In this document: piece by piece, positions 33,665 to 52,505 of the stretch
Layout of the letters: every line of letters starts with the position of its first letter
How positions within the stretch are numbered: position 1 is the first letter of the stretch
Virus record (IMG/VR): IMGVR_UViG_3300032236_001850
Location: 248,001 to 312,000 of that record
Length of the DNA: 64,000 nt
Strand: one strand, 5' to 3'
Program-made: the position numbers and the translations under genes
The notes under the pieces: model-generated
What the model was told of the DNA's origin: nothing
What the model saw: the letters and a program-made list of their open reading frames with translations, nothing else
The model's database searches: none

Positions 33665-34024
33665 ATGGCAAAAGTTTATGTAAAGAATAGTGAACTCATG
33701 GCAGCAGTGATTGAATCAAAAAATGCTGGAAAATTGACACCCGAAACTATAGAGATGTTCAATCTTATGATTGAAGGTATATCTAAGAAGATGTCATACA
33801 AAGATCCTGAGGATAAAGAGGATTGTATGGCTTTTGCCATGGAAGATCTTTGTAAATATTGGAATAGATTCAATCCAGAAAAATCAAATAATCCATTTGC
33901 TTATTTTACTCAGATAGCAAAACACGGATTTGCTAAGGGATGGAAAAAATTACATCCACCAAAAAATCCAGTAACGATACCATTTAGTTATATTACTGGT
34001 GATGATAATTCATATAACGTATAG
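33665..34024 (+). CDS. gp55: Minimal late sigma factor (T4 gp55-like)
   Basis: RFNPEKSNNPFAYFTQIA matches the gp55 FDP.KS.NPFAYFTQ signature; only 119 aa. Confidence 0.8.
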   Translation: MAKVYVKNSELMAAVIESKNAGKLTPETIEMFNLMIEGISKKMSYKDPEDKEDCMAFAMEDLCKYWNRFNPEKSNNPFAYFTQIAKHGFAKGWKKLHPPKNPVTIPFSYITGDDNSYNV

Positions 34025-36190: not shown

Positions 36191-37843
36191 ATGGCAGGAT
36201 TTTTAGACTTTTTAAAACCCAATCAAGCAGCTTTGGGTAACATACTTAAAAATTTGGGTAGCATATCCAAATTTGGTATGCAGTACGATGACATGGTTGT
36301 TAGAAATTCGCAGGCTATTGGTAGAACCGAGGGTGCTTTTTTCAATCAGGAAGGAACAGGATATACTAAGGATAGCGCATTTCAATGGACAGCTTCGTAT
36401 CATGACACTAAGGTAAGAAAATACATAGCTTATTTTGATAAATCATATGGAGAAAAAAGAGATTATTTAAGAAAGTTTTCCATAAATGGTGAGATAGAAT
36501 TCATACTGGATATCATAACAGATGAGGCCATAGTATATGACGATAGAAACTATTTTGCGCAGCCTTCATTTTCCAATCTTGATCTTAAGGACAAAGTTAA
36601 GGAGAGGGTAAGCACACATTTCAATAGACTTTATAATATATTTCAGTTCCAGAATACAGTATTGGGCTGGCAATATTTCAGACAATTTATAATAGATGGA
36701 TTCTTGGCTTTTGAGATAATCTATGATAATAAGGGAAAGGAGATAATAGGATTCAAGGAACTTGATGCTATTTCTTTACAACCAACGGTAGAAAAAGTTG
36801 GTGAAAATGAATATAAGCAGTTCTGGATACAATATCCAAGTAATCCACAAATGTTTAGAAAACTTACTAATGAACAAGTTATCTACATATCATATGCGAA
36901 GGGTAATACTATATCAAGAACAAGTTACGTTGAAAGACTTGTAAGATCTTATAACATTCTAAGAATTATGGAGAATTCTAGAGTTATCTGGAACGTAATG
37001 AATGCCAGTTATAGAATGAAATTCATAATTCCCATAGGAACACAGTCTCCACAAAAAGCCATGCAAACTTTGGGACAACTTATGTCCAACTATAAGGAAG
37101 AGATTAGCATAAATGATTCATCCGGAGAATTAACAGTAAACGGTAGACCTAAGGTTCAATTCTATAAGAATTATTTATTTCCCGAACAGAATGGAGTTTC
37201 ACCAGAGATATCTTCTCTGAATCCAGCTGGACCTGATTTCAATGTTATGGATAATGTTCTTTATTTCTTCAATAAATTAAAAATGGATTCTAAAATCCCA
37301 TATGCTAGATTTGCTGCAAAAAATGGAACACCTGCTAATTACCAAATAGCAATAGATCAGCTTGAAAGAGATGAAATAAGATTCGAAAAGTTTCTAAGAA
37401 GACTTCGTTCAATATTCCAGGAAATCCTGGTTAAACCACTCTATATACAAATGTGTTTGGAATACCCAGAATTGGCTAAAGATAGAAATTTTAAAACCAA
37501 CATAGGTTTAAATTTTAATAGAGATCTTGAATTCGAGGATCAGGTTGAAATGACTAATCTTAAAAAGAAAAGTGAATTTGTAACTGCTCTTTCAGATTTA
37601 AAGGTAAAAGCTGGGGAGGAGGATGTACCTTATTTCGATAATGACTTTCTGATACAGAGATTTTTAGGTATGTCTCCTGATCAATTGAAATTGAACGAGG
37701 AATACAAGAAAAAAGAGGAAAAAGCCGGAGCTGCACCTCCTGCTGCTGGCGGAGAATCAGCACCCGCTGCCGGATCGGCTGCTCCCGCGGGAGAAACCCC
37801 ACCAGCAGGTGGCGAAGCAAAAGCACCACAGGTAACACTATAA
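36191..37843 (+). CDS. gp20: Portal vertex protein, copy 2 (paralogue)
   Basis: Same motifs: FRQFIIDG, SYVERLVRSYN, KNYLFP, DEIRFEKFLRRLR. Confidence 0.9.
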   Translation: MAGFLDFLKPNQAALGNILKNLGSISKFGMQYDDMVVRNSQAIGRTEGAFFNQEGTGYTKDSAFQWTASYHDTKVRKYIAYFDKSYGEKRDYLRKFSINGEIEFILDIITDEAIVYDDRNYFAQPSFSNLDLKDKVKERVSTHFNRLYNIFQFQNTVLGWQYFRQFIIDGFLAFEIIYDNKGKEIIGFKELDAISLQPTVEKVGENEYKQFWIQYPSNPQMFRKLTNEQVIYISYAKGNTISRTSYVERLVRSYNILRIMENSRVIWNVMNASYRMKFIIPIGTQSPQKAMQTLGQLMSNYKEEISINDSSGELTVNGRPKVQFYKNYLFPEQNGVSPEISSLNPAGPDFNVMDNVLYFFNKLKMDSKIPYARFAAKNGTPANYQIAIDQLERDEIRFEKFLRRLRSIFQEILVKPLYIQMCLEYPELAKDRNFKTNIGLNFNRDLEFEDQVEMTNLKKKSEFVTALSDLKVKAGEEDVPYFDNDFLIQRFLGMSPDQLKLNEEYKKKEEKAGAAPPAAGGESAPAAGSAAPAGETPPAGGEAKAPQVTL

Positions 37844-37931: not shown

Positions 37932-39269
37932 ATGATAGAGAAATTAAAACTTTTTAAAGAGCTTGAATCATTAACAGGCAACGGGTCACAAAAATCAAAA
38001 CAGGATTTAATCAGAAGTAACATTGACGATGAACTAAAGTATATTCTTGATGTTTGCTTCAACCCATTCGTGACAACAAAACTTCATAAGATTACTTTTA
38101 ATGAAACTATATCGGAAAGTAATCATAATCTATGGGAAGATTTTAGATCTCTCTTAGAGGAGCTTAAAACAGCTCCAGCAGCAAACGATTTCCTTAGAGG
38201 TAGAGCAAGCAACCTCATTTCATCAAGAATTAGTGATGATCCCAAAGAGGATCTTGAACTTAGATCCATTTTGATGAAGATCATAACTAAAAGAATGAAT
38301 ATAGGAATCGGTGCTAAATTAATAAACAAAGCACTTTCCTATGAGCTTATACCAGATCCTTCCGTGATGCTTGCTACTGATGACCAGGAAACAATTGAAT
38401 CGTGGAAAAAAATATATTGTGAGGAAAAATATGACGGTGTAAGAGTTATTGCTATATGTAAATCTGGTGAAATCTCATACTTTACCAGGGCTTTCAATGA
38501 GCTTGATCCAACTTGTCTTTCCCGTATTTCTTTCTCGTTAAAAACAGCCATGATTAATAGTGGACAAGGAATATTGGGAGACTGGTTCTTTGATGGCGAA
38601 TTGACAGATCTTAATAGAAAATCGGTAAGTGGTAAGGTGACACAAATACTAAAGGGAACAGCACCTAAAAACATAGATGATAATATGTTATTTAATGTTT
38701 TTGATTTTGAGGAAGTTTCAACACTAACTCATGGATCTGGTGTTCTAGATTATCTTACAAGAAGAGCAACCCTAGAAAAGGTCACTTCTTTCCTTCCTGA
38801 GAATAGTCCGGTAGTTCTTGCTAGAATGTGGGAGCTTGATAATTCTGCGGATGTTACTGAGATTTATAAAAAAATAGTTGCTGATGGTGGTGAGGGTGTT
38901 ATCTGTAAAAGCAACTCGGTTTATGAATGTAAAAGATCTAAAACATGGATCAAGCTGAAAGAAGTTAATGATTGTGATTTAGTTGTTAGTGGATGGTATC
39001 CAGGTGAAGGTAAAAGGGAGGGATTTATAGGTGGTTTCATTTGTACCGATGCATCGGGAACACTGAACGTGAAGGTTGGTTCCGGTTTTACCGATAATGA
39101 TCTTAAAACTTTAAGTGAAACACCGGATCAGCATATCGGTAAAATAATTGCAGTTCAATATAATGTTACGATAGAAGACAAGCATGGTAATAGATCTTTA
39201 TTTTTACCTAGATTTATCGAAATAAGAAATGATAAGGATACTGCTGATGATTTAAGTAATAAATTTTAA
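37932..39269 (+). CDS. ATP-dependent DNA ligase
   Basis: EEKYDGVR, FDGE, FDFE, EGVICK, WIKLK, GSG. Confidence 0.95.
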   Translation: MIEKLKLFKELESLTGNGSQKSKQDLIRSNIDDELKYILDVCFNPFVTTKLHKITFNETISESNHNLWEDFRSLLEELKTAPAANDFLRGRASNLISSRISDDPKEDLELRSILMKIITKRMNIGIGAKLINKALSYELIPDPSVMLATDDQETIESWKKIYCEEKYDGVRVIAICKSGEISYFTRAFNELDPTCLSRISFSLKTAMINSGQGILGDWFFDGELTDLNRKSVSGKVTQILKGTAPKNIDDNMLFNVFDFEEVSTLTHGSGVLDYLTRRATLEKVTSFLPENSPVVLARMWELDNSADVTEIYKKIVADGGEGVICKSNSVYECKRSKTWIKLKEVNDCDLVVSGWYPGEGKREGFIGGFICTDASGTLNVKVGSGFTDNDLKTLSETPDQHIGKIIAVQYNVTIEDKHGNRSLFLPRFIEIRNDKDTADDLSNKF

Positions 39270-39276
39270 TTAATAC

Positions 39277-40221
39277 ATGATACAAGAATTATTAACAGAA
39301 AAGCTCCGACCAAAGAAGCTGGAGCATATGATATTACCATCCAGAATATCAAAGGTTTTTGAAAATGGATTGGGTCAGAATGTTTTATTAAGTGGATCTC
39401 CAGGATGTGGCAAAACTACATTAGCAAAAATATTAGCCTCCCCATTTCCCCATTTATTTATAAATGTATCCGATGAGAGCTCTGTGGAGGTCATCAGAAC
39501 TAAAATAACGGACTTTTGTTCAACTATATCCGTTATGGATGGTAAATCTTCCAAAAAGGTTGTCGTATTGGATGAGTTTGATGGTGCATCTGATCAATTT
39601 TATAAAGCATTAAGAGGAACTGTTGAAAAATATGCAGCAAACACAAGATTCATAGCAACCTGTAACTACATAAATAAAGTTCCGGATGCTATGCAAAGCC
39701 GATTTGAAGTTATTGACTTCAATCCAATAAGTACCTCTGAGGATGAAGCTTTGAAAGGGGAATGGTCGAATAGAGTAAAACTCATTCTTGGTAAGATTAA
39801 CGTTACTATAGAGGAGGAAGCACTTTCTGAATTTCAAAAGAGTTATTATCCAGATTTCAGAGCAGCACTAAATAAGATTCAAGCATGGATGATTGAAGGT
39901 GTTACTAATATAGATTCAGCTAGAGTTAAGGAGTTTGGCTGGTCATATGAACATCTTTACAATTTATTAGTTTCATCTAAGGATCCGGTTAAGAATTACC
40001 AGATGCTTGTCGGTGAATATCAAGGAAAAACTGATGATGTCATGTCAGCTCTTGGCGAAGAGTTCATAAATTGGATAATAAACAATAAACCAGAATTATC
40101 TAAAATTATACCAGCAGTTATCGTTCTCGTTGCTGAACATCAGGCTCAGAGGATCCAAGTAATAGATCCAATGGTTTCTTTGCTATCCTTATTCTTTCAA
40201 ATTCAGAAACTTATAGAATAA
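39277..40221 (+). CDS. gp44: Clamp loader ATPase subunit (T4 gp44/RFC-like)
   Basis: GSPGCGKTT, VVVLDEFD, FIATCNY, QSRF, YPDFR. Confidence 0.9.
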   Translation: MIQELLTEKLRPKKLEHMILPSRISKVFENGLGQNVLLSGSPGCGKTTLAKILASPFPHLFINVSDESSVEVIRTKITDFCSTISVMDGKSSKKVVVLDEFDGASDQFYKALRGTVEKYAANTRFIATCNYINKVPDAMQSRFEVIDFNPISTSEDEALKGEWSNRVKLILGKINVTIEEEALSEFQKSYYPDFRAALNKIQAWMIEGVTNIDSARVKEFGWSYEHLYNLLVSSKDPVKNYQMLVGEYQGKTDDVMSALGEEFINWIINNKPELSKIIPAVIVLVAEHQAQRIQVIDPMVSLLSLFFQIQKLIE

Positions 40222-40742
40222 TGGATAATAAAAGAATTATATTAGTTGGAAAGGGTGCATGTGGTAAAGATTATGCAAGACAACAATTAGAAAATTACGG
40301 CTTTAGATACTGTGTTTCCCATACAACCAGACCTCCTAGGGAAGGTGAAATAAATGGTACCGATTATCATTTTATAAGTTTGGATTCTGCAATACATCAT
40401 TTTATTGCAAAGAATCTGTTTTACGAGTATGTAGAATTTAATGGCTGGATATATGGGACTACCATAGAGGAATTTCAAAAATCTAATCTTTTTATCATGA
40501 CTCCAGGGGGTATAAGTAAATTAAAAACCTTTGATAGGGAGGAATCATGGATAGTCTATATAGATATACCAGAAAACATCAGAAGGGAGAGACTACTCAA
40601 ACGTAACGATGCTGATGATGTCGAGAGAAGATTGGCTGCTGACGAAAAAGATTTTGAAAACTTTACTGATTTTGACGCTAGAATAACTGATCCTAACTTT
40701 AATATAGAAGGTGAATTAAAATGGATAAACTTATCCAATTAA
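40221..40742 (+). CDS. gmk: Guanylate kinase
   Basis: GKGACGKD, VSHTTRPPREGEINGTDYHF. Confidence 0.85.
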   Translation: MDNKRIILVGKGACGKDYARQQLENYGFRYCVSHTTRPPREGEINGTDYHFISLDSAIHHFIAKNLFYEYVEFNGWIYGTTIEEFQKSNLFIMTPGGISKLKTFDREESWIVYIDIPENIRRERLLKRNDADDVERRLAADEKDFENFTDFDARITDPNFNIEGELKWINLSN

Positions 40743-40758
40743 TTAAAAAAAATTAATA

Positions 40759-41913
40759 ATGATAAACATATGTATAGATGGTAATCACCATTTCCATAAA
40801 ACCTTTGGAGTTTTTGCAGGTTATGGAAATCTTGATCCAGGAAAGGTCCTTAAGGAAAAATCGGAACAAGCTGCTTTTATAAGAAAAGTTGCTACTGATC
40901 TTTGTGCATCTCTTAAAATGCTTCCACAAGGTGGAAGAATGATATTTACTGCGGATAGCAGAAGTTGGAGAAAGGACGTTGAGATAGAGGATGGCGGGTA
41001 TAAATCAGGGAGAGTAAAAGATGAAAATGTGGATTGGACTATATTCTTTGAACTTATGGCATCCTTTGGTGAGCAATTAGAAAAAATGGGATTTATATTT
41101 TCAAGGGTTGAAGGAGCGGAGGGAGACGATCTTCTGATGTTTTGGTCCGATTATTTCAATTTGCTTGGTGAAAACTGTTTAATTATAAGCGGGGATCACG
41201 ATATGCACCAATTAGCAAAAATGAATGATAAGGCTTGGACTGCTGTTTGGAATACAAATTCTAAAAAGAATATGCTTTCTGTGCATGGTGGATGGGAGAA
41301 TGAATGGTTGAATAAGAATGAATCTGTTGGAATGAGTATATTTAATATGTCATCCGCAATTTCACCAGAGAAGGATAGATTTAAGGAATTTCTAAAAAAA
41401 GTAAATATAGAAAAAATTGATAGCTACGCTTTTATATTTCATAAGATACTAATTGGTGATGATGGTGATTCTGTTCCTAGTGTTTGGGAATATAAAGTTA
41501 AGGACAAAAATGGTGAAGATAAGGTTGTTAGGTTTACTGACAGTAAAGCAAAGAAAGTTTATTCTGCATTTCTTGAAACTGAATGGATTAATATACCATT
41601 TGATAAACTAATTAAAAATCAGGATTTTCTTAATTGGATAAGCGGTTTAATTCTGAGAACAACTAAAGATCTTGATAGCATGGACAATAGAAAGAAAGTT
41701 TCTAGTAATCTTGAAAGAAATTTAATTCTTATGTGGCTTAATCATAAAGTTATTCCGCAGTTTGTCATTAAGGGTGCATCTCAAGAAATTTTAAGAGGGA
41801 TGGAGATGCAAAAGAAAAATGTTACTCTCGATCGCATAAAAATACTTGAAGGTAGCGAATGGGTAACTTCTGGATATCAACCGAAAGGATTTGATCCTTT
41901 CTCATATTTATAA
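40759..41913 (+). CDS. 5'-3' exonuclease / RNase H (FEN/PIN fold)
   Basis: IDGN, D..SWRK, YK..R, EGDD, SGDHD..QL, ILIGD.GD.VP. Confidence 0.8.
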   Translation: MINICIDGNHHFHKTFGVFAGYGNLDPGKVLKEKSEQAAFIRKVATDLCASLKMLPQGGRMIFTADSRSWRKDVEIEDGGYKSGRVKDENVDWTIFFELMASFGEQLEKMGFIFSRVEGAEGDDLLMFWSDYFNLLGENCLIISGDHDMHQLAKMNDKAWTAVWNTNSKKNMLSVHGGWENEWLNKNESVGMSIFNMSSAISPEKDRFKEFLKKVNIEKIDSYAFIFHKILIGDDGDSVPSVWEYKVKDKNGEDKVVRFTDSKAKKVYSAFLETEWINIPFDKLIKNQDFLNWISGLILRTTKDLDSMDNRKKVSSNLERNLILMWLNHKVIPQFVIKGASQEILRGMEMQKKNVTLDRIKILEGSEWVTSGYQPKGFDPFSYL

Positions 41914-41915
41914 AA

Positions 41916-42338
41916 ATGGAACTTTTTGATATAGTAAAAAATATATTCTCAAAAAATCAAAGAATCTGGGATTCCGTAGGAAAAAACGACAAGACTCGTA
42001 ATTTTTTTATGATCAACAGAATAATGGCTATACAGTTTCCTGTACAAGCAAACCAATTCAACAAAATGAGGGTTACTCCACATTTTGTTGTCGATTGGTG
42101 GAGAAACACATTATCTAATAGATTTTCAAAACCACCAACCTGGATATACACGAAAACAATAAAGAAAGAAACTGTAAATAAAAAAACAAAAACATCAGAT
42201 TATAGCGAAGTTGAAAATTTTATTTGTGATAAATATAAGATATCCAAGAGGGATCTTCTGCAAATAAAGGAATTCTATCCCGATAGATATAATGCCTGGA
42301 TGATTGACGTTGCAGATCAGTTAGGTTTAAAAAAATAG
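41916..42338 (+). CDS. Probable clamp loader small subunit (T4 gp62-like)
   Basis: FMINRIMA...ANQFN...W..K...ICDKYKIS resembles gp62 (FIINR.LS...ANEMN...KW.K...EYYGYS). Confidence 0.5.
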   Translation: MELFDIVKNIFSKNQRIWDSVGKNDKTRNFFMINRIMAIQFPVQANQFNKMRVTPHFVVDWWRNTLSNRFSKPPTWIYTKTIKKETVNKKTKTSDYSEVENFICDKYKISKRDLLQIKEFYPDRYNAWMIDVADQLGLKK

Positions 42339-42349
42339 ATATATAGAGG

Positions 42350-42886
42350 ATGAAAAAGGAAACCGATAAAGTTATTGATAAGATCCTTTCCGGGATGGAT
42401 TGGGATGTTATATTTGAGGTTAATAAATGTTTTAAACATGGTGTCGGTGACGGGGTATCTGTCATTCCTGGTGTTAAAAGAAAAGCATTTGCCGACGGAA
42501 TCACTAAAAATGATTTAAAAAATGAATTAAAAAGTCTCCTTAAGTATGTCATAGAAAACAATATTCCTGAATTAATATACGGTTATTGGATGATATTTTG
42601 GAATAATCCTTTATGGACTGATGAATATCTTGATGAAATCAAGGAAGAAATGGGTGAGGATGAGAGTGATCTAATAGGAGATCTTATAATAGATCCAACA
42701 TTAGAGGTAATATATTCTCCTCAAAGAATGTACATCATAGCTAATAATATAAAAAATCAACAGGAGACTGTAAGTACAGATTCCGATGCTCTTGAGACAA
42801 TGTTAAATAAAGCACTTGGTGATGAAAAATTTGAACTTGCTGCTAAGATAAGAGACGTTATCAATTTGCAGAAGGATCAAAAGTAA
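42350..42886 (+). CDS. Hypothetical protein with C-terminal UVR (UvrB/UvrC) motif
   Basis: LNKALGDEKFELAAKIRDVI. Confidence 0.65.
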   Translation: MKKETDKVIDKILSGMDWDVIFEVNKCFKHGVGDGVSVIPGVKRKAFADGITKNDLKNELKSLLKYVIENNIPELIYGYWMIFWNNPLWTDEYLDEIKEEMGEDESDLIGDLIIDPTLEVIYSPQRMYIIANNIKNQQETVSTDSDALETMLNKALGDEKFELAAKIRDVINLQKDQK

Positions 42887-42901
42887 AATAATAATCTTTA
42901 G

Positions 42902-43381
42902 ATGAAACACATTAAGAGCATATACGAGTACCTTGACGGCGGAGTATTTGGTGACACGTACGGTCTAGGTAGCGGTAACGGTGTTATGAAAGTTAGTTAT
43001 AAACCATATAACGATCTTTCAGTATCCGTTGGTCCTGATCCTAATATAGATAGAACTGTGAAAGGTTCAGAATTTCAGCTTGGTGATGTTGTAGAATCAC
43101 AACCCTTGGATTCTAAGAAAAAGGTTATTGGTGTTATAGTGAGATGTTTCAGAAACCCAGACAATAAGCAATATAGATACTTTATACAAGCTTATTATAA
43201 GGGTAAGAAAAGTAAGAAAATCATAGAAATAAAATCAGATTGTATTAAATTTGCTGAAGGTGGAGATCATGGAAACATGGAAACAATATCAAAATCTAAA
43301 GCAAGTGATATACCAGGATCAGCTTATAATTCTAAAACTGTTTATGGATCTAGTGAATTAGGTCAAGAAAACAACGTTTAG
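42902..43381 (+). CDS. Hypothetical protein, capsid-targeting-like N-terminus
   Basis: MKHIKSIYE|YL. Confidence 0.6.
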   Translation: MKHIKSIYEYLDGGVFGDTYGLGSGNGVMKVSYKPYNDLSVSVGPDPNIDRTVKGSEFQLGDVVESQPLDSKKKVIGVIVRCFRNPDNKQYRYFIQAYYKGKKSKKIIEIKSDCIKFAEGGDHGNMETISKSKASDIPGSAYNSKTVYGSSELGQENNV

Positions 43382-43382
43382 A

Positions 43383-43410
43383 GAAACCAATTCAATCATT
43401 TATAGTACAA
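43383..43410 (+). promoter_or_regulatory. Putative middle promoter GAAAC...AGTACAA
   Basis: Shared motif class upstream of 43427. Confidence 0.45.
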
Positions 43411-43426
43411 ATAAGAAACCCTATAG

Positions 43427-44332
43427 ATGATATTCGGACACAATCAAACAAACATATCGTATCTTGGTATCCCCAAGAAATCAATAACAGTAGACAAGAG
43501 GATATGCTCATATGAGGATATCCTCGATCTTATTTTGGCACTATGCATTGTCAATTCTAAAATATCCTCAAAAATAGTTTGTCTAAATCTTGGTGAACTT
43601 GAAATAACTGGTGAATTCCTGAATTCTGATTTTATAGAGGAGGAAGATCCAATTATATCCGAAAGAATAAACGAGATAAACTCCATAATAAATAAGAACT
43701 CCATGAGAGTTGTATTTTTTATAGGAAAGGATTATTTTTTAGGTAGTCAGCTTGAGGAGGTTAAGGAAAAAACAATAAAAGTTTTAAACAAACTTTCGGA
43801 TGTCCTAGAAGCTATAGGTATGAATGGTCCATCAATTGTTATAAGAATTGGATCAGCATACGGGAACAGAAAAAGAACAATGTCCGAGTTTTGTACCATG
43901 ACCAAGAAGCTGAATTATTCAACAATACAAAGATTGACCGTAATGAATGACGAGAAACCTAGTTTATTCTCTATTACGGATCTACTCTCTGGGGTTTACT
44001 ACGAAACCGGTATTCCTTTATGTTTTAGAATATTACCACATCAATTTAACGACGGTGGTTTAACAATAAGGGAAGCCATGTTTCTTGCAGCTTCAACATG
44101 GAAAGTTAATTCAAAACCTTTCTTTTTTCATTCGGAAGCATCTGATATTGATAGCAATGGTAAAGCATTATCTCCCGAATGTTCAGATTCACTAACTATG
44201 AGAATACCAACATTCGGTCTTGATATTGATGTTATAATCGATTCACCAAGCAGAGAACTTTGCTATCTTGGTTACCTGAAATCCCATAGAGGTTTACCTC
44301 CAACTGTTATTAATAAAATTTCAAAGAAATAA
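43427..44332 (+). CDS. UvdE/UvsE UV-damage endonuclease homologue with degenerate active site
   Basis: IGSAYGNRK, RLTVMNDEK.SLFS, IPLCF, GGL..REA..LA.STW, GLDIDVII follow the UvdE pattern. Confidence 0.7.
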   Translation: MIFGHNQTNISYLGIPKKSITVDKRICSYEDILDLILALCIVNSKISSKIVCLNLGELEITGEFLNSDFIEEEDPIISERINEINSIINKNSMRVVFFIGKDYFLGSQLEEVKEKTIKVLNKLSDVLEAIGMNGPSIVIRIGSAYGNRKRTMSEFCTMTKKLNYSTIQRLTVMNDEKPSLFSITDLLSGVYYETGIPLCFRILPHQFNDGGLTIREAMFLAASTWKVNSKPFFFHSEASDIDSNGKALSPECSDSLTMRIPTFGLDIDVIIDSPSRELCYLGYLKSHRGLPPTVINKISKK

Positions 44333-44335
44333 TTT

Positions 44336-44363
44336 TTATTTCCGTAATTATTGATTATATTTG
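44336..44363 (+). promoter_or_regulatory. Putative early promoter, Bacteroidota-type TAnnTTTG
   Basis: TTATTTCCG then TATATTTG at 44356-44363, upstream of the 3'-5' exonuclease. Confidence 0.55.
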
Positions 44364-44378
44364 GATAAAATTATAATT

Positions 44379-45077
44379 ATGTTCAAACTAGAAACAATAG
44401 AAAATTACCTTTATTTTGATGTTGAAACAGTCTGCTCAGAGAAGGATCTTTCAACACTACAGATTAAAAATCCAAGACTTGCTGAGCTATGGAAAAAAAG
44501 AGCCACTTATTACAGAGGTGCCAATCCTGAGATCTCACAATGGAGTGATGATGATGTATATCTAGCTAAGGCATCACTGGAACCTGAATTTTCTAGAGTT
44601 GTTTGTGTTTCCTTTGGATCTTTTAGTAATGGAGAAAAAGTTTTTAAATCTTTTTACGGAACCGATGAAATAGACATTTTAGAAAAAAGTAACAAAGTTT
44701 TTAATAACGCATTGGCAAAAAATTGGAAATTATGTGGACATAACATAAAGGGTTTTGATGTACCTTGTTTAGGTAAGAGAATGGTTTATAATGGTATAAA
44801 TCCATCTTTAAATTTGCAGGTATGGGATAAAAAACCCTGGGAAATACCTTATATTGATACCTCAGATGTTTTTGCTTTTGGAAGCTGGACTCAACAAAAA
44901 TACCTAAGTCTGGATCTTCTCTCGTGTTCACTTGGTATTAAATCACCCAAAGAAAATATGGATGGCTCCAAAGTTAATGAACATTTTTGGAATAATCAAG
45001 CATATGAGGAGATAAAGGATTATTGCGAGATAGATGTCAGAACAGTCATGGACGTTCTCCAGAAAGTCTGCTTCTAA
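44379..45077 (+). CDS. 3'-5' exonuclease (DnaQ/PolB-exo-like)
   Basis: FDVETV, GHNIKGFDVP, YCEIDV (DEDD motifs). Confidence 0.85.
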   Translation: MFKLETIENYLYFDVETVCSEKDLSTLQIKNPRLAELWKKRATYYRGANPEISQWSDDDVYLAKASLEPEFSRVVCVSFGSFSNGEKVFKSFYGTDEIDILEKSNKVFNNALAKNWKLCGHNIKGFDVPCLGKRMVYNGINPSLNLQVWDKKPWEIPYIDTSDVFAFGSWTQQKYLSLDLLSCSLGIKSPKENMDGSKVNEHFWNNQAYEEIKDYCEIDVRTVMDVLQKVCF

Positions 45078-45095
45078 AAAACAATCAAATACATT

Positions 45096-45132
45096 AAAGC
45101 TTTCCTTGGATATATAAAGGAAAGCTTTTTTT
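45096..45132 (+). terminator. Terminator hairpin whose loop is the late promoter motif
   Basis: AAAGCTTTCCTT-GGATATATA-AAGGAAAGCTTT plus T-run. Confidence 0.7.
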
Positions 45133-45948
45133 GTGGACAAAATATTCAATTTTAATTTATTTATAGAAAATGATGGTGACTCAATTTTTGAAAAGAAAGT
45201 TGGAGCATTCTATCATGATGAATTAAATCCAATTTTCTGGAAAAAGAAAAAGGATAAAAATGGAAATATCGAATGGGTATTCGATCAGCGAGTTAGAAGA
45301 AAACTTTTAAGAATAGCTAACGATTTCTATGAAAAATACTCCGAATTGTTAAAAGGAAGAGTAATAAAGGACATCCAACTAACCGGATCCTTATCTAATT
45401 ATAACTACACTAATTTCTCTGATCTTGATGTACATATCATTGTAAATCTTGATGGTATAGATGACGAGAATCCAAAAATACTTAAGACTGCCATTGATGG
45501 TATAAGATTTGTCTGGAATCTTAGACATAATATATCAATTAGAGGATATGACACCGAACTATATCTTCAGAGTGAGGATGAACCACATGACTCATCCGGT
45601 CTTTTCTCACTATTAAATAATGAATGGATAAAGACACCAGTATTTTCACCGCCTGTAGTGGATGAGATGGATGTGAATAAAAAGTATGGATCCATAGTTT
45701 TTGAGATAGACAAATTACAAACGAAATTAAGAGATCTTTCGGATCTTCCAAGTAATGCCAAGTCTTTATACAAAAGATGTATTAAACTTAAAGATAAGAT
45801 CCAAAAAATGAGGAAAGAAAGCCTTTCTAGAGACGGTGAGATGTCAATTGGTAATCTTGTATTTAAAAAGCTAAGAAATGAGGGATATATAGAAAAATTA
45901 ATAGATACCATATCTAAATCTTACGATAAAATTTACACTGAAAAATAA
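45133..45948 (+). CDS. Pol-beta-superfamily nucleotidyltransferase with capsid-targeting-like N-terminus
   Basis: LTGSLSNYNYTNFSDLDVHI (GS...DxD) and GYDTELY; N-terminus MDKIFNFNLFIE|ND (GTG start). Confidence 0.7.
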   Translation: MDKIFNFNLFIENDGDSIFEKKVGAFYHDELNPIFWKKKKDKNGNIEWVFDQRVRRKLLRIANDFYEKYSELLKGRVIKDIQLTGSLSNYNYTNFSDLDVHIIVNLDGIDDENPKILKTAIDGIRFVWNLRHNISIRGYDTELYLQSEDEPHDSSGLFSLLNNEWIKTPVFSPPVVDEMDVNKKYGSIVFEIDKLQTKLRDLSDLPSNAKSLYKRCIKLKDKIQKMRKESLSRDGEMSIGNLVFKKLRNEGYIEKLIDTISKSYDKIYTEK

Positions 45949-45956
45949 TTTGAATT

Positions 45957-48740
45957 ATGAATATAATTTTACCTAAAGCTGGAAAATATAACATGGGTGA
46001 TGACTTTCCTATGATAAGTATTCCAACTGATATATCATCACTTAACCCAGAGGAAAAAACATTCGATGATTTTCAATGGTGGGCACAAACAAGTGAGTTC
46101 AAAAAGTGGATGGACAAAAATAAGAGAGAATGGCAAGCTGATTCTGAGGATATGTCTAAATATGGTGGTTCAATAACAGATATAATTAAGGAACATGTTG
46201 AATCATACATTCTTGATAATCAATTGAATGAATCTGATGTTCTTTCTTTTAATGAATTTGATACCATTAACGAGGCTGACGAGAATGCTCTTTCTGAGGA
46301 TGCAAAAAAAGGTATTAAATTTCATTATGCTTACAATAAACTCAAATCAGAAGGAAAATTAAAAAATATAACAAATGTTGATGCAGATTTTCCTACTGGT
46401 GCTGAAAAAGCAGTTTTTATAAGTATGGAAGATCAGGAGACTAAAAAAAATATAGATGAGACATTGAAAGCCTTCAAAATGATAGGTTTACAAAGCTCTT
46501 CTGAATCAAAAGTAAAAATAATTTCAGTTACTGAATCTCTACCTGGCGGAAAATTAGATCCTGATACAACTATGCAGGAACTTGTTGAGGGAATGTTAAA
46601 AACAGCTGGTGAATATGCTGCTATTGGTGTTGGTGTAGGTATAGCATGGGCGGTATTAAAAAGAGTTGGTTACGGGGTTAGCGCTGGATATGTTCTTAAA
46701 AAAATAAAAGGCCTTGCTCCTGTAGCCAAGGAAGGCGAGGAAGTGGTAAAAACAACAGGGGCTTTAGCTAAAGCCGGTAAATATGTTAAGGGTCTTGCAT
46801 CCGGAGGTATTAAAAAAGTTAAAGTTCTTGGTAGTGGATTGGTGGATCTTGCTCAATTTAAGAATATAAGAAATGCGGGGGTTGGTGCTTATAAGGGTTT
46901 TACATCATCCTTTAAATTTACTAGAGGTCAATCGTCAGCAACAAGAATAGGAAAGGCTTTATTAAAGGGTAAAAATTTAGGTGCCGAGGGTGCTGTTAAA
47001 ATAGCAACAGAAGCCGGTGCTAAGGGAGCTTCTAGATTTATCCCCTTTGTCGGCGAAGTTCTTTTAGCAATAGACGCCATTGGGTCAACTTTCAACTGGT
47101 TTGGTACAAATCAAGCACCAAAATGGGATGAAATTGAAGGAACTATTGCAACAGGTAAGGGTGGTAAAGAATTCGATCCTGGTAAAATAGCGGATGGTAC
47201 TTCAATTACGATATGCTGGAGACAACCGGCAGGAACCGGTCTTGGTATCGCTGCAAGTTTTGCTTGGAATAATGATACAAGAACAACAGCCGAATTATTT
47301 AAGATTGGTAAGGGTAAGGATGGTGATTCCATATTTATATTAACTGCAATAAATTCTAAGGAATACCAAAAAGCTCTATCCGATCATGCAGTTACGTTAG
47401 TATCCATTAAGAATGGTCCTATAAATTCACAGAGTGGATTTTCAGCATTAAGAAGAATCGTTGATAATGAGGATATGGACGTTAAAGTAGCTTATTTAGA
47501 TACTCCAGATAAGATTGCAAGTAGTTTTAATTTTATGGGTATATGTGACTGGAATCTTCTTATGCAATATTACGATCAGGCATCTGATCAGTATTTAATA
47601 ACAGATAGTAATGCTCCAGAAACATACGAATATTACTATCAGACAGCAAGAAAGGATTATGTGAACGTTTCTGGTAAGCTTCTAAATAATGAAGAATTAG
47701 GTGCAAAAAGTATTACTGATATAGATGAAATATTCGCAGATTCTAATAAAAAATTAAATAATAAAAAGCCTGAGGAGAAAGAAACTGAAAAAAAGAAGGA
47801 AAAACATGTTGTTAATCCTGGAGATAATGGACCACCTAAATACGATGAAAAGAAGCAGGGTGCAACAGGATCTTCTGAGCCTAAGGTAAATGATTCCGAA
47901 AATAACAAGGAACTTTGGATGGTTCCTATGATCTCTGAAGCATCTAATAGTGGTTTAGTTATTCGTAAGTTTTCTGAATTTGAGGATGTTCTTGAATATG
48001 TAAATACCATAGGTAAATACCCGGAACATATGAAAATTAACGAGAGTAAAGGTGATGATGTATTAAGACCGACCGCGGAGGAAGCATCAGGCCCTGCCAA
48101 ACTAGCAGTATATGACGTTACAAGTATGCAATATGCAAACCCTGCAGATAAACAATATACACCAAATGCCTTCAAATACTTCATCATAGGTCCTGATGAT
48201 TTTGATGCCAAAGTTGGATCCAGTATAGAGGTAGGTATTAGTACAGATGAGACCTTAATAGATCCTAGAAGAGGTGTTTATGAATACAAGGAAGAGGTTA
48301 AGAAGAAAGACGAGGAAGAAGGAAAAACGTCAACGAATCCTGAAGAGAATCCAAAACAAAATGACGAAGAATCTGGTGACGACCAAACAAAGCCTAGAAA
48401 GGATGATTACTTCATAACAGCAGATCCTGATGATATAAGCATTAAAAACAGAAAGAATGCTACAGTGATAAGGGATCATAATTTCAAGGGCGGTATAAAC
48501 ATTGTGGACGAATTCCTTACAGATAAGGAAAAAGAAGTTTTAGGAATACCTACATGGAAAGCAATAACATTAGCTAAAACATTCATGAATGGACAAGGTG
48601 AAGTTATAAAAGTTAAGCTTAAAAATAGATATGCTCCTATGTTTAATACTGTAAAAACATATGAAGTTAGGGATGGTGAAGCTTTCCAAATTGCTAAAAA
48701 ATTCGCTAAAGAGGTTGAAGATAGAATAAAATTTCAATAA
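45957..48740 (+). CDS. Large putative internal virion/ejection protein
   Basis: Gly/Ala-rich hydrophobic segments (AAIGVGVGIAWAVL; IPFVGEVLLAIDAIG); several (L/I)NE sites. Confidence 0.55.
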   Translation: MNIILPKAGKYNMGDDFPMISIPTDISSLNPEEKTFDDFQWWAQTSEFKKWMDKNKREWQADSEDMSKYGGSITDIIKEHVESYILDNQLNESDVLSFNEFDTINEADENALSEDAKKGIKFHYAYNKLKSEGKLKNITNVDADFPTGAEKAVFISMEDQETKKNIDETLKAFKMIGLQSSSESKVKIISVTESLPGGKLDPDTTMQELVEGMLKTAGEYAAIGVGVGIAWAVLKRVGYGVSAGYVLKKIKGLAPVAKEGEEVVKTTGALAKAGKYVKGLASGGIKKVKVLGSGLVDLAQFKNIRNAGVGAYKGFTSSFKFTRGQSSATRIGKALLKGKNLGAEGAVKIATEAGAKGASRFIPFVGEVLLAIDAIGSTFNWFGTNQAPKWDEIEGTIATGKGGKEFDPGKIADGTSITICWRQPAGTGLGIAASFAWNNDTRTTAELFKIGKGKDGDSIFILTAINSKEYQKALSDHAVTLVSIKNGPINSQSGFSALRRIVDNEDMDVKVAYLDTPDKIASSFNFMGICDWNLLMQYYDQASDQYLITDSNAPETYEYYYQTARKDYVNVSGKLLNNEELGAKSITDIDEIFADSNKKLNNKKPEEKETEKKKEKHVVNPGDNGPPKYDEKKQGATGSSEPKVNDSENNKELWMVPMISEASNSGLVIRKFSEFEDVLEYVNTIGKYPEHMKINESKGDDVLRPTAEEASGPAKLAVYDVTSMQYANPADKQYTPNAFKYFIIGPDDFDAKVGSSIEVGISTDETLIDPRRGVYEYKEEVKKKDEEEGKTSTNPEENPKQNDEESGDDQTKPRKDDYFITADPDDISIKNRKNATVIRDHNFKGGINIVDEFLTDKEKEVLGIPTWKAITLAKTFMNGQGEVIKVKLKNRYAPMFNTVKTYEVRDGEAFQIAKKFAKEVEDRIKFQ

Positions 48741-48777
48741 TTCAATAAAAAATCGAAAAAATACAGATATATCCGTT

Positions 48778-48785
48778 GATATATA
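48778..48785 (+). promoter_or_regulatory. Putative late promoter GATATATA
   Basis: Upstream of ATG 48799/48808. Confidence 0.6.
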
Positions 48786-48798
48786 AGTAACATAAAAT

Positions 48799-50763
48799 AT
48801 GTACAAAATGCCAACAACTAAAAAATTAAACGAAGAATTAGTTTTCATTCTAGAAAGACAATCATCCGTTCTTGAATCTTCAAGAAACGATAATGATGAT
48901 TATGTCCTTGAAGGTATTGCTGCTGTTTTCGGTAAAGAGAACAACAATAATAGAATATATGAAGAAGCTGAATATCTTCCTCACTTAAACTATCTTAATG
49001 AGAAAATAGCTCAGAGAAGATTGGTTGGAGAATTGGATCATCCTGAAAAATTTGACGTTTCTCTTAAAAACATTTCCCATATAATCGAAAAACTTGATTA
49101 TGATAAAAATGGAAGAGAAATTAAAATTAAAGTTAGACTTTTAGATACACCAATGGGTCAGATAGCTAAAAATCTTGTTGATGCAGGAGTTCCTCTTTCT
49201 ATTTCTTCCAGAGCAGCTGGTTCTGTTGGTAATGATAAAAAAGTTCAAATTAAAAAAATATTCACATATGACCTAGTTGCTGATCCTGGTTTTCAAGACG
49301 CACAACTAGAAAGAGTATATGAAAGCGCTGGTTATCATTTTAGTGATTTCTTCGAAATGAGAAATAAAAGTGTAACTAACGATCTACTTTGTGTAAATGA
49401 ATCATTAGGTCTAAAAAATGATTCAGATGTGAAGATATATAAAGTTGAAAATAACGAAGAATTTAATAACCTCGTATCAAAATCAGATAAAAATAAGACG
49501 ATCCTCATGGAGAATAATGAATTTGTGACTGCAGAAGAATTAAACCAATATTCTGTTTTCTTGAAAAAAGAGATGGAAGCAATGAATTCTAAAATTGCAG
49601 AAATTAAAGAACAAAAGCAAGTATTAACTGAATCTAGCTTTGAAGATAAAAATTCAAACCTTGAAGAAAGAGTTGCTAAATTAGAAAAATATTCTGAGTA
49701 TTTAGCTGAGAATTTAGATAATGCTATTAAGTATGGTGAATACCTTGCTGAAAACTTAGACGAGAGTATAAGTTATAGCAAATATTTAGCTGAAAACTTA
49801 GATAAGAATATTTCTTATTCTAAATATCTTGCTGAAAATGTTGACAAATCAATTTCTTATACTGAGTACGTTGCTGAATCAACAGATAAAGGTATAGAGT
49901 ACACTAAATATCTTGCTGAGAAATTAGATCAGAACATTCAATACTCTGAGTACTTAGCAGAAAACTTAGACAAAGGTATTTCTTATTCTGAATATCTTGG
50001 TGAGAACTTAGACAAAGGTATAGCTTACTCTGAGTACCTAGCAGAAAAATTAAATGATGGTATCGAGTATTCCGAATACCTTGCAGAGAATCTTAACAAG
50101 AATATCCAATATTCCGATTACCTAGCAGAAAATGTTAATAAAGGTTTAGATTATTCTGATTACTTAGCAGAAAAATTGAAAAAATCAATCTCTTACAGTG
50201 AATATATAGCTGAGACAGTTAATACAACTAAATACAAAGCTACTGACTCATTAAGAGAAAGTGTAGATCTTTCAGCTTCAGCAGGATTAAATGAATCAGG
50301 ATTTGCTGGAGATTATACAGATCTTACAACAAGAATAGATAGTTTGATAGAATCAGTTAAAACACAAAAAACTGAGTCAAATATAAATGAAGCTTCTAAA
50401 TCAATGAAGCAAACAGCCAACACACAAAAGGCAGACGAAGTTCTTAACGAAAATGAGAACAAAAACAAAACAGGTCTTAATTTTATTGACACAATGCCTG
50501 AAGAATACACACAAGTTTGGGAATCACTTACTGAAGGACACAAGCAATCAATTATTGCTCAAAGTAACTTCTATAGATTAGATACACCTTACCAAGTGAA
50601 AAACTTCTGGTCAACACGTCAATTAGGAACTGCACCAGTTGGAGTTCAAAAATTAGACGAGAGCGAAAATATCGCAATGCCTAATGCACAAACAAGCGGT
50701 TATTCTAACGAATATATGAACGCTATTGCTGCTGCATTAGAGAAAAAATTTCAAACAAGATAA
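48799..50763 (+). CDS. gp21: Prohead protease (T4 gp21-like) fused to scaffold/core domain
   Basis: NNNNRIY, GELDHP, ISHII, LDTPMG, SSRAAG, TYDLVADPG; C-terminal coiled-coil repeats. Confidence 0.9.
   Translation: MYKMPTTKKLNEELVFILERQSSVLESSRNDNDDYVLEGIAAVFGKENNNNRIYEEAEYLPHLNYLNEKIAQRRLVGELDHPEKFDVSLKNISHIIEKLDYDKNGREIKIKVRLLDTPMGQIAKNLVDAGVPLSISSRAAGSVGNDKKVQIKKIFTYDLVADPGFQDAQLERVYESAGYHFSDFFEMRNKSVTNDLLCVNESLGLKNDSDVKIYKVENNEEFNNLVSKSDKNKTILMENNEFVTAEELNQYSVFLKKEMEAMNSKIAEIKEQKQVLTESSFEDKNSNLEERVAKLEKYSEYLAENLDNAIKYGEYLAENLDESISYSKYLAENLDKNISYSKYLAENVDKSISYTEYVAESTDKGIEYTKYLAEKLDQNIQYSEYLAENLDKGISYSEYLGENLDKGIAYSEYLAEKLNDGIEYSEYLAENLNKNIQYSDYLAENVNKGLDYSDYLAEKLKKSISYSEYIAETVNTTKYKATDSLRESVDLSASAGLNESGFAGDYTDLTTRIDSLIESVKTQKTESNINEASKSMKQTANTQKADEVLNENENKNKTGLNFIDTMPEEYTQVWESLTEGHKQSIIAQSNFYRLDTPYQVKNFWSTRQLGTAPVGVQKLDESENIAMPNAQTSGYSNEYMNAIAAALEKKFQTR
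49690..50235 (+). repeat. 13 tandem 42-bp (14-aa) coding repeats, consensus YSEYLAENLDK.I.
   Basis: Counted directly in the translation. Confidence 0.9.
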
Positions 50764-50780
50764 AAAAAAGTAAATAAATC

Positions 50781-52505
50781 ATGAAATTGATTAACGAACA
50801 AGAAATCTACGATACATGGTCACCGCTTATCGAGAGCAAAGCTGGTATCACAGATGAAGGAAAAAAAGGGTGGTTAACTAAATATTGCCACTATCACTCA
50901 TTAAACGAGTCTGCTGGTGCTTATAACACTTTAGGTGTTGTAAATGGTATGGGTAACGTTGCTCCTCCTGCATTCCCAGGAATGAATATGGGTGGTACAA
51001 CATTATCTACACAAGCTAATGCTGGTTTCTACAACACACAATGGCAAGGTTCAGGTGATAAATTCCCATCATTATTACCTTTAGCAATTCAAGTTGCTGC
51101 AAAAACTATCGGTTTCGACATCGTTCCGGTTATCCCTATGTCAGGTCCAACTGGTATCTTATCATACTTGGATTATGTTTATGCTGGTGGTAAAATTGCT
51201 GCTGCTGCTGGTACTGATGCTGCTTCTCAGTTAGCTAGTGCCCCATCAATGATCAAATTCCCAGTTTATCAGTCATCTACTGGTGCTACTGGTGCTACTG
51301 GTGCTACTGCAGGTACATTTACAGCTGGTGCTACTGGTAACATTGGAACATTAAACTTAACATTCATAGGTCTTTCTAGAATTGATGGTTTCCCAATCTT
51401 CCAAGTAACTGGTATGGCTGCTGGTTCTAACATTGCTAGCTATATTAACGGTACTCCTACTGTACTTACTAACTTTGGTTCTAGTGGTTTCTATACTGGT
51501 GCTACATATTCTAGTAACGGTTATACAGCTCAATTAGTTAAAGCTTTAGAGGATCACATCCAAGGTTTCTCTGGTGCTGGTTTTAATAATACTGATGCTT
51601 GGCAAGGTCCTTACGTTGATGGTACTAAAACTTACAATCCTATGTTAAGAGGTGTTGGTGAGTCTACTTACTTCAACTCAATGGGTCTTTCGACTTTCAC
51701 TAAATTCGTTGAAGCTGAGACATTCCAAGTAGCTGCTTCTGTTACAACAGAGCAAATACAAGACCTTAACAAACAATTCGGTATCGATGTTATTTCAATG
51801 ATCGAGAACGCATTGGTTAATGAGGTATCTCAAGCTATTAACAAACACATCTTAGCAAGAGCATTTGCTTTAGGTTGGTCAAATCACGTTTTATTCAACA
51901 GTGTTGAAAACCAAAACTTGAACTTAAACCTTGTGATCAACGGTTCTGCTGGTACAACATTCTCTTACATCAACAAAATTGATGCTAACGTTGCAATGGC
52001 AATTCCAGCTGGTCCTGCTTCAGGCGGTTATGAGAACTTATCAACTCTTCAAAGAAGATTATTCTCAAGAATCCTTGCAGCTGCAAACGTAGTAGCTAAC
52101 AGAGGTAGAAGAGGTCCTGCTAACTTCATCGTTACTAACGCTGCTGTAGCAAGTGCACTTCAAGATATCTCTCAGTTCACTTTCGCTCCATTCTCTAACA
52201 CATTAACTCAAAACAATGGTACTTTATACCCTGTAGGTTCTCTTGCTGGTATGACTGTTTACGTTGATCAGAATATGCAGTATTCTGATACGAGAGTATT
52301 AGTTGGAAGAAAAGGTGGTGATGATGAACCAGGATTAAAATTCATGCCTTACATGATGGCAGAGTCTATTCAGACAATCTCTGAAGGTACTATGTCACCT
52401 AAGATCGCAGTTAAATCTAGATATGCTTTAGTAGAAGCTGGTTTCTTACCAGAAACTATGTACTTAACATTCTTTGTTAACGTACCTGCTGGTGGTTTAG
52501 CATAA
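50781..52505 (+). CDS. gp23: Major capsid protein (T4 gp23-like)
   Basis: W.PLIE, LNE|SAG propeptide, VIPMSGPTG, QDL..QFGID, RGRRGPANF, MPY, KSRY. Confidence 0.95.
   Translation: MKLINEQEIYDTWSPLIESKAGITDEGKKGWLTKYCHYHSLNESAGAYNTLGVVNGMGNVAPPAFPGMNMGGTTLSTQANAGFYNTQWQGSGDKFPSLLPLAIQVAAKTIGFDIVPVIPMSGPTGILSYLDYVYAGGKIAAAAGTDAASQLASAPSMIKFPVYQSSTGATGATGATAGTFTAGATGNIGTLNLTFIGLSRIDGFPIFQVTGMAAGSNIASYINGTPTVLTNFGSSGFYTGATYSSNGYTAQLVKALEDHIQGFSGAGFNNTDAWQGPYVDGTKTYNPMLRGVGESTYFNSMGLSTFTKFVEAETFQVAASVTTEQIQDLNKQFGIDVISMIENALVNEVSQAINKHILARAFALGWSNHVLFNSVENQNLNLNLVINGSAGTTFSYINKIDANVAMAIPAGPASGGYENLSTLQRRLFSRILAAANVVANRGRRGPANFIVTNAAVASALQDISQFTFAPFSNTLTQNNGTLYPVGSLAGMTVYVDQNMQYSDTRVLVGRKGGDDEPGLKFMPYMMAESIQTISEGTMSPKIAVKSRYALVEAGFLPETMYLTFFVNVPAGGLA

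Follow-up and report, generated by a model that had tools for sequence, protein, structure and literature searches.

A putative nucleotidyltransferase (NTase) encoded by an uncultured huge phage may be packed in the capsid and injected into the host with the phage DNA, as is the Alt protein of phage T4. The gene lies in IMG/VR virus record IMGVR_UViG_3300032236_001850, of which we analyzed a stretch of 64,000 nucleotides (hereafter the window; positions given below are counted from its first letter). Virion delivery of the NTase is plausible, with a probability of roughly 0.4, and we infer every step past translation. It is also the most coherent single reading of five features, namely, an N-terminal leader, a candidate protease site, a promoter element in front of the gene, a conserved gene order, and domain fusions among homologs. 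A first-pass annotation made from the nucleotide letters alone had suggested such an injected effector, and its individual claims are taken up below where the relevant results are described.

The open reading frame (ORF) reported in that annotation agreed exactly with our ORF call in position, strand, and length (271 amino acids [aa]). Its GTG codon is the first possible start past an in-frame TAA at 45115-45117; close homologs are of equal length, and several likewise begin with a non-ATG codon. The two peptides cited as evidence for a GS...DxD...D/E triad of the Pol-beta superfamily were located at residues 83-102 (LTGSLSNYNYTNFSDLDVHI) and 138-144 (GYDTELY). The triad itself (G85-S86, D97-x-D99, and E142) was conserved across an alignment of 84 homologs with 34-87% identity, in which G85 was invariant and S86, D97, D99, H101, W128, H132, and E142 were at least 90% conserved. 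Conservation extended to basic and polar residues in the C-terminal part (K184, R227, N241, K245, and R248). Ten residues separate G85-S86 from D97-L-D99, in agreement with the Pol-beta motif rule hG[GS] x9-13 Dh[DE]h. With this intact conserved triad, the NTase is apparently catalytically competent.

The annotation had also named structure prediction as a check, with the lack of an NTase fold counting against the proposal. An NTase-type core was found. AlphaFold2 supplied with an alignment, from which three sequences from annotated records were left out, returned a model with a mean pLDDT of 89.9 (the single sequence yielded a pLDDT of 50 and an unusable model). The model combines a minimal Pol-beta-type core with a long C-terminal three-helix bundle; residues 1-24 are poorly defined, with pLDDT values of <50 for residues 12-21.

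The strong matches of the NTase were to unnamed proteins only, including phrog_36119, which has no assigned function, AFDB clusters (E values down to 2e-21), BFVD entries (down to 8e-27), and Atlas models (TM scores of 0.76-0.83); the AFDB and BFVD matches spanned E values of 1e-15 to 1e-27 and TM scores of 0.65-0.82. We regard phrog_36119 and the clusters labeled [quoted passage not shown] from uncultured Caudovirales as the true family of the NTase, the members of which are functionally uncharacterized. The family comprises 1,288 clusters at 90% identity and 3,582 at 50% identity. All matches with recorded taxa were from tailed phages (Uroviricota), and within those the family appears to be phage-only. 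Against Pfam NTP_transf_2, the query scored 16 bits (cutoff, 21), and the homologs P0188, P0206, and P0183 passed the NTP_transf_2/Polbeta gathering score at 23-25 bits; matches to Polbeta (PF18765) were sub-threshold only and occurred in a few homologs. Judged from sequence and model, the NTase belongs to a large, phage-restricted, uncharacterized branch of the Pol-beta superfamily that consists of the minimal core and the three-helix bundle.

None of the candidate subfamilies put forward in the annotation (CD-NTase/cGAS, MenT, and AMPylators) could be assigned using Pfam, PADLOC, NCBIfam, or Foldseek, so the targets proposed along with them (tRNA, protein, and nucleotide signals) remain guesses. 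Foldseek searches of the PDB and Swiss-Prot models mostly retrieved two-domain NTases, and these weakly (ANT(9), KNTase, AadA, LinB, CdnC/D/E, and TENT5; best E value, 5e-3; TM score, about 0.2). VIA-align, run on whole PDB representatives and also to re-rank the Foldseek matches, was dominated by generic three-helix bundles at residues 175-271, with the core matched by 2rff only, and a phmmer search of the PDB with the single NTase sequence returned nothing meaningful. The best solved-structure matches were aminoglycoside and lincosamide NTases (ANT(9), ANT(4')/KNTase, AadA, and LinB), which share with the phage protein an N-terminal NTase domain, a C-terminal helical domain, and a length of about 250-270 aa. 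The similarity was nevertheless weak (Foldseek E values of 5e-3 to 1e-1; TM score of 0.21 for the match with the best E value), with no NCBIfam match at an E value of ≤1 and no Pfam match; these enzymes act on antibiotics, and the phage context gives no reason to expect such a substrate. One cyanophage homolog carries an aminoglycoside-type NTase annotation. The CD-NTases CdnC, CdnD, and CdnE have the same triad and a helical C-terminal half, but their Foldseek E values were 0.02-0.08, and the cGAS-like two-lobe superposition failed (TM scores of 0.16-0.25; root mean square deviation of 15-20 Å). By sequence, too, the NTase gave no match to a PADLOC CBASS cyclase model (PDC-S09 only, E value of 0.003) or in Pfam. 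The MenT and AbiEii-DUF1814 models of Pfam and PADLOC gave no match, and no small antitoxin-like partner stands beside the gene, its neighbors encoding an exonuclease and a 927-aa protein. Finally, the family profile retrieved as its top PDB match the AMPylation domain of DrrA/SidM, a GlnE-like NTase and injected Legionella effector (E value of 0.005). This likeness covers about 53 residues of the universal GS-DxD strands only; SidM_N scored 17-18 bits in two homologs (cutoff, 27), and no fold-level match stood out.

The N terminus of the NTase is where the case for packaging begins. It had been described as capsid-targeting-like, and at the sequence level this description held, in that the NTase falls, as an atypical member, into a leader class that recurs throughout the phage genome. 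N termini of the pattern ^M..[ILVM]..[FYW]..[FYW] occur in 45 of 592 ORFs compared with 9 of 2,192 internal methionines. The consensus is MKNIKxFExFINE, and the full form is M-x-x-[IL]-x-x-[FY]-x-x-[FY]...[LIV]-x-E; among the 45 ORFs, position 4 is I or L in 42, and position 7 is F or Y in all, as the pattern requires. A relaxed pattern collected 71 ORFs, 59 of which have no detectable mutual similarity past residue 25, which indicates that the leader is a module rather than a paralog signature. Codons vary at the conserved leader positions, which argues for selection on the peptide. A motif [ILVMF]xE is present at residues 9-22 in 72% of the leader ORFs and in 22-27% of controls. The leader is further associated with the octamer GATATATA, described below, a copy of which precedes 31 of 63 leader ORFs and 43 of 529 others (odds ratio of 10.9, p = 1e-14). 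Among the recognizable domains of leader ORFs are those of cell-wall proteins (SLT, CHAP, glucosaminidase, Tlde1/YkuD, and OmpA-like), RimK-type ATP-grasp, RNase T-type exonuclease, and AAA ATPases, although the relaxed pattern probably picked up a few of these domain-bearing ORFs falsely. The cell-wall enzymes are of a kind typical of virion-delivered proteins.

The class resembles the T4 capsid-targeting sequence (CTS), MKTYQEFIAE, in which mutations affect targeting mainly at residues 4 and 7 and processing at residues 8 and 10 (PMC9026906). Both begin with M-K and carry a hydrophobic residue at position 4, an aromatic residue at position 7, and then [LI]-x-E, but the leader described here is one helical turn longer. 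The phage further shares with T4 a gp21-type S77 prohead protease, a capsid protein of the Gp23 type, and a late sigma factor of the gp55 type, and the leader is attached to unrelated proteins, as in the Alt/IPI-III system. The NTase, like Alt, is an enzyme from a host-modifying superfamily. In contrast to T4, the putative cargo is an NTase rather than an ADP-ribosyltransferase, and the leader occurs on about 60-70 ORFs rather than a handful.

Residues 1-20 of the NTase (MDKIFNFNLFIENDGDSIFE) are thus proposed to be a capsid-targeting propeptide with a protease site. I4 and F7 occupy the two positions that matter most for targeting in T4. T4 gp21 cuts after the Glu of [LI]-x-E-type sites (e.g., ITE-6 and LTE-619 of Alt), and I-F-E18-20 is the sole [LI]xE of the whole NTase (0 observed versus 3.3 expected in the core); it lies in a low-confidence stretch of the model, five residues ahead of the conserved core. 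The phage protease is fused to a scaffold built from numerous tandem repeats, each about 11 aa long (YSEYLAENLDK and variants). Many of the repeats contain L-A-E, the gp21-type cleavage motif, and this suggests that the scaffold may be diced into short peptides. These L-A-E motifs and the L-I-E and L-N-E motifs at the N terminus of the capsid protein are as gp21-like specificity predicts. A complex prediction for protease residues 1-240 and NTase residues 1-45 had a score of 0.00, which counts neither for nor against binding. Among homologs, the leader is variable or absent, and leaderless proteins start directly at the core; 122 homologs with an N-terminal NTase carry it, and in 118 of them an [ILVMF]-x-E site lies no more than 12 residues from the core. 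The leader therefore appears to be gained and lost as a unit, which fits the pattern of the related T4 enzymes, with Alt injected and ModA and ModB made postinfection.

The annotation had also given the gene its own promoter, and the element in question, GATATATA, proved to be promoter-like, of the type found before structural genes, and conserved in relatives. The window contains 15 copies, all on the + strand, compared with 6.2 ± 2.6 expected (none of 100 shuffles reached 15), and 10 of these stand 9-37 nt before ORF starts, usually past a hairpin and a T run. Genome-wide, the + strand has 65 copies and the - strand 27, in keeping with gene orientation, and the element is found at the start of 74 ORFs, including the sheath gene, one portal gene, the protease-scaffold gene, and several giant tail-fiber-like genes. 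The T4 late promoter is a similar 8-bp AT-rich element, TATAAATA. Given this similarity, the position before structural genes, and the gp55-like sigma factor encoded by the phage, we read GATATATA as a probable late promoter, with the gp55-like sigma as its likely reader. A sigma-70 promoter scan showed no enrichment (15 found versus 21 expected). The distances from the element to the start codon cluster at exactly 12 nt, which would yield near-leaderless mRNAs, or at 21-37 nt; the 12-nt spacing is common on leader-bearing ORFs (e.g., copies at 42338 and 52591, compared with the longer spacing of those at 45109 and 48778).

The promoter claim requires one correction, as the copy before the NTase gene sits inside the 9-nt loop of a terminator-like hairpin. 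The hairpin (45096-45128; dG of -17 kcal/mol; z of -4.9) was not equaled in stability by any of 200 shuffles and was missed by our terminator scan because of its 9-nt loop. It would fold in RNA reading through from the exonuclease gene, and RNA begun inside the loop would not form it; the structure thus looks like a compact terminator of the exonuclease gene with a promoter inside. In one relative (L004), the hairpin is kept with other stem bases and the same loop motif, with GATATATA at -26 of the NTase gene; in another (L005), the element is kept at -29. A second copy of GATATATA lies within the NTase coding region (45884-45891) over conserved G-Y-I-E codons, 73 nt ahead of the gene for the 927-aa protein, and may be an internal promoter or just a by-product of codon choice.

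Gene order was conserved in three relatives with 59-68% identity (L004-L006). It runs from portal through ligase, clamp loader, guanylate kinase, FEN, three small ORFs, UvdE, (Fpg), and PolB-type exonuclease to the NTase, and then to a protein of 820-930 aa, the protease-scaffold, and the capsid protein. Portal and protease are thus separated by a DNA-repair block (37932-45077; ligase, clamp loader, guanylate kinase, FEN, UvdE, sometimes Fpg, and the exonuclease; conserved in L004 and L005). The same two genes lie almost side by side in Tenacibaculum phage PTm1, with no NTase gene between them, so the repair block looks like an insertion. A 159-aa ORF in the block (42902-43381) starts with the leader-like MKHIKSIYEYL, and its homologs in L004 and L005 start with MKHIISINEF and (V)KLRYIKTINEFF, respectively.

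On its other side, the NTase gene is followed after 9 nt by the gene for the 927-aa protein, and the spacing is 2-9 nt across this phage and the three relatives. The terminator, the promoter, and this short spacing together appear to tie the NTase to the head unit rather than to the repair block. The annotation had the NTase leading into a large putative ejection protein. The juxtaposition stands, whereas the label "ejection" finds no support in Pfam, PHROG, NCBIfam, or the Atlas and is a guess. The N-terminal 200 aa of the protein are acidic and contain six [LI]xE sites, and the stretch from about residue 215 to 400 is rich in Gly, Ala, and Lys; the protein had no family match in the three databases, and its Atlas model had a pLDDT of 0.33 and no credible Atlas relative. 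It is possibly a prohead core or internal protein, which is as good a reading as ejection.

Domain fusions offered a further clue. In longer homologs, the NTase module is fused to ART-PolyVal (e.g., homolog P0261, 2.7e-17), M23 peptidase, Zeta toxin, NUDIX, GNAT, and adenylate kinase domains; the M23 fusion was also present in 98% of one Atlas cluster, and one BFVD match is named as an amidoligase. Polyvalent proteins with such domains, which comprise 2-15 effector domains per polypeptide, were predicted by Iyer et al. (2017) to be packaged and injected (PMC5512222). NTase homologs similarly occur in long multidomain phage proteins with effector domains. Unlike polyvalent proteins, the NTase described here has one catalytic module and the leader, and the NTase clade of the polyvalent-protein study is a minimal one, fused to ArdC-N and occurring chiefly in conjugative elements of firmicutes (PMC5512222). 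The fusions indicate that the module is a mobile, effector-like unit, and they do not imply that this copy is packaged. In four clusters of distant homologs (P0173, P0178, P0183, and P0186; L007 3301-4746), the protein begins with a double-glycine bacteriocin-type leader (...ELSDEELEQVAGG), and at least two of the four carry a second leader-like motif next (e.g., MKDLFAIWRHHLNE). Neighboring genes at L007 begin with MKLLMESWRxFLNE, and one has the Pfam Acb5 family.

If these features are read together, transcription of the NTase gene would occur late, from a gp55-type promoter of its own, and the gene would open an NTase/927-aa unit that is immediately followed by the protease-scaffold and capsid genes. 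The NTase leader would dock the protein into the prohead scaffolding core, and the S77 protease would cut the leader off at I-F-E20 and possibly at E12 as well. The mature enzyme would be retained in the head, enter the host with the DNA, and transfer a nucleotide to a host molecule ahead of any phage gene expression, which would mirror T4 Alt.

Several observations weigh against this sequence of events. The NTase leader is a weak fit to the genome consensus, with a leave-one-out position weight matrix score of 0.5 bits compared with a median of 19; as it still ranks 16 of 548 and no internal-methionine control reaches its score, we regard it as a divergent, atypical member of the class. We know of no precedent for a capsid-targeting tag on about 12% of ORFs, so the leader may have a different meaning. 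Depletion of [LI]xE, scored as the observed/expected ratio, was marginal in leader proteins genome-wide (0.96 versus 1.17, p = 0.07), and within the NTase family (0.64 versus 0.84, p = 0.048) the sequences are not independent. The cultured relative PTm1, which has a similar head module, has no leader-type N termini around its head genes. The protease and capsid genes of relatives are represented among metatranscriptome contigs, none of which falls at 45000-48800, the region of the NTase and 927-aa genes. The NTase gene directly follows the repair block, and homologs in other phages are found away from head genes: among NUDIX/MazG/RNR genes in Maribacter phage Molly, between gp55 and RNR in Synechococcus phage S-B68, and beside DNA polymerase and RegA in Synechococcus phage DSL-LC02. 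Even a leader-bearing homolog, that of jumbo phage L029, lies near topoisomerase genes; upstream of it and of another leader-bearing neighbor, elements resembling GATAAATA and TAAATAAATA were read by eye. Because homologs in other phages stand amid replication and nucleotide genes and are often leaderless, virion delivery, if real, would be lineage-specific.

These settings lead to the main rival explanation, in which the NTase is an unpackaged intracellular enzyme of the adjacent repair/nucleotide-metabolism block, acting in gap filling, end modification, or nucleotide modification. The N-terminal motif would then serve folding, stability, or the assembly of a cytoplasmic complex. The conserved order of the repair block does end at the NTase, and many homologs lack the leader. 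Nucleotide chemistry is suggested both by the neighborhoods in Molly, S-B68, and DSL-LC02 and by the fusion partners NUDIX, adenylate kinase, and possibly an NT5C-like domain. Yet the strong hairpin terminator and the late-type promoter part the gene from the repair genes, and it is linked by 2-9 nt to the 820-930-aa gene that precedes the protease and capsid genes. No likeness to RlaP, Pol X, or other repair NTases was found in Pfam (at an E value of ≤0.1 for RlaP and Pol X) or among the listed Foldseek matches (50 from the PDB and 30 from Swiss-Prot models). Moreover, none of the annotated replication, repair, transcription, and major structural proteins in the window bears the leader. We consider this explanation a serious one, although on balance doubtful.

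A second rival, which we consider improbable, accepts the leader as a targeting signal but sends it elsewhere (the envelope, the periplasm, export, or another phage-built structure), with the NTase as one cargo of many. Many leader ORFs encode domains that act on peptidoglycan (SLT, CHAP, glucosaminidase, Tlde1/YkuD, and OmpA) and therefore need to reach the periplasm; four distant homolog clusters have the double-glycine leader noted above; and about 12% of ORFs is much for capsid cargo. The leader, however, is short, acidic, and amphipathic, unlike Sec, Tat, and lipoprotein signals; it agrees with the T4 CTS at positions 4 and 7, which were defined by experiment, has the T4 protease motif at its end, and is linked to the promoter of structural genes. 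An NTase, in addition, requires cytoplasmic NTPs. Very improbable is a third rival, a head-assembly or structural factor that retains the NTase fold, such as a core component working with the 927-aa protein: the conserved position ahead of the protease-scaffold and capsid genes, the late-type promoter, and the tight coupling to the 927-aa gene would suit it, but the triad and H101/H132 are conserved across thousands of diverse homologs that mostly occur in other contexts, the domain is a mobile one that also exists in fusion with other enzymes, and PTm1 has no such gene between portal and protease.

Returning to virion delivery, a broader version of it would extend to the whole leader class. 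In that version, an extended T4-like capsid-targeting leader, shared with other uncultured jumbo phages, marks about 60-70 unrelated proteins (about 12% of the genes), each with a late promoter, as a large injected arsenal of cell-wall enzymes, an ATP-grasp ligase, nucleases, and the NTase. We hold this tentatively and as somewhat unlikely. Were it true, the NTase would be the first nucleotidyltransferase known to be delivered via the CTS/prohead-protease route, and the phage would pre-load dozens of enzymes, far past the T4 paradigm. If the leader is a capsid-targeting signal, sequence could directly reveal which proteins uncultured huge phages inject, and the leader could serve as a tool for packaging foreign proteins in large capsids, as the T4 CTS has. 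Since the family is very large, has an intact active site, and recurs in polyvalent-type fusions, the substrate of the NTase, once found, would annotate thousands of phage genes and would probably reveal new host-takeover or counter-defense chemistry.

Table 1. Positions of the NTase gene, its parts, and related features in the window
Feature	Position	Strand	Basis
NTase gene, 271 aa, GTG start, stop codon included	45133..45948	+	ORF call; homologs; phrog_36119 (1e-35)
Proposed NTase leader, residues 1-20 (I4, F7, F10, F-I-E12, I-F-E20)	45133..45192	+	Disordered in model
Minimal Pol-beta-type NTase alpha/beta core with beta-hairpin, residues ~26-170	45208..45642	+	AlphaFold2 model
G85-S86 ... 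D97-L-D99 metal-binding motif, then H101	45385..45429	+	Sequence; 84-sequence conservation
E142, third carboxylate	45556..45558	+	≥90% conserved (84 sequences); invariant in 13-sequence alignment
C-terminal long three-helix bundle, residues 178-271	45664..45945	+	Model; generic helical-bundle matches only; conservation
Terminator-like hairpin (perfect 12-bp stem, 9-nt loop, T run up to start codon)	45096..45132	+	RNA fold
GATATATA, late-type promoter element, 24 nt ahead of GTG	45109..45116	+	Enriched, strand-specific, kept in relatives
PolB-exo-like 3'-5' exonuclease, last gene of repair block	44361..45077	+	DNA_pol_B_exo2 (2e-11); phrog_25228 (8e-36); order kept in L004-L006
Downstream partner gene, 927 aa, function unassigned	45957..48740	+	No Pfam, PHROG, or NCBIfam match
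GATATATA ahead of protease-scaffold gene	48778..48785	+	
T4 gp21-type (S77) prohead protease fused to repeat scaffold	48799..50763	+	Peptidase_S77 (1.8e-8); phrog_207 (1.2e-39)
T4-type major capsid protein, L-I-E18 and L-N-E43 before Gp23 core	50781..52505	+	Gp23 (7e-42)
gp55-like late sigma factor	33665..34024	+	phrog_234, "late sigma transcription factor" (2e-15)
Leader-bearing ORFs, examples in the window	386, 45133, 52621, 59652, 61967		

The record is a single contig of 434,509 bp with 35% GC, of which the window represents bases 248,001-312,000. A simple ORF call with genetic code table 11 gave 592 ORFs covering 92% of the genome, and this coding density, together with ordinary stop-codon usage, ruled out an alternative genetic code. 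The phage is a huge T4-related myovirus from freshwater. It encodes the Gp23-type capsid protein, the T4-type S77 protease-scaffold, two T4-type portal paralogs, a sheath, a large terminase, and the gp55-like sigma factor. The nearest named relatives of the capsid protein belong to uncultured huge phages (LR7565xx) and Lak megaphages and, further off, to Flavobacteriia jumbo phages. The region was present in DNA sequencing runs of pond and aquatic metagenomes. Contigs from freshwater and wastewater metatranscriptomes with 85-99% identity span 48805-50999, the left-most beginning at 48805, just past the promoter at 48778.

The two T4-type portal paralogs are in tandem (34552-36186 and 36191-37843; Portal_T4, 5e-56; phrog_213, 5e-68), and the first only has its own GATATATA. 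A second sigma-like protein (26045-26713; phrog_1740, 2e-22) is, like the gp55-like sigma, encoded within the structural region. Further downstream, an asparagine synthase-like protein is encoded at 58194-59600 (Asn_synthase, 1.6e-39, with GATase domains).

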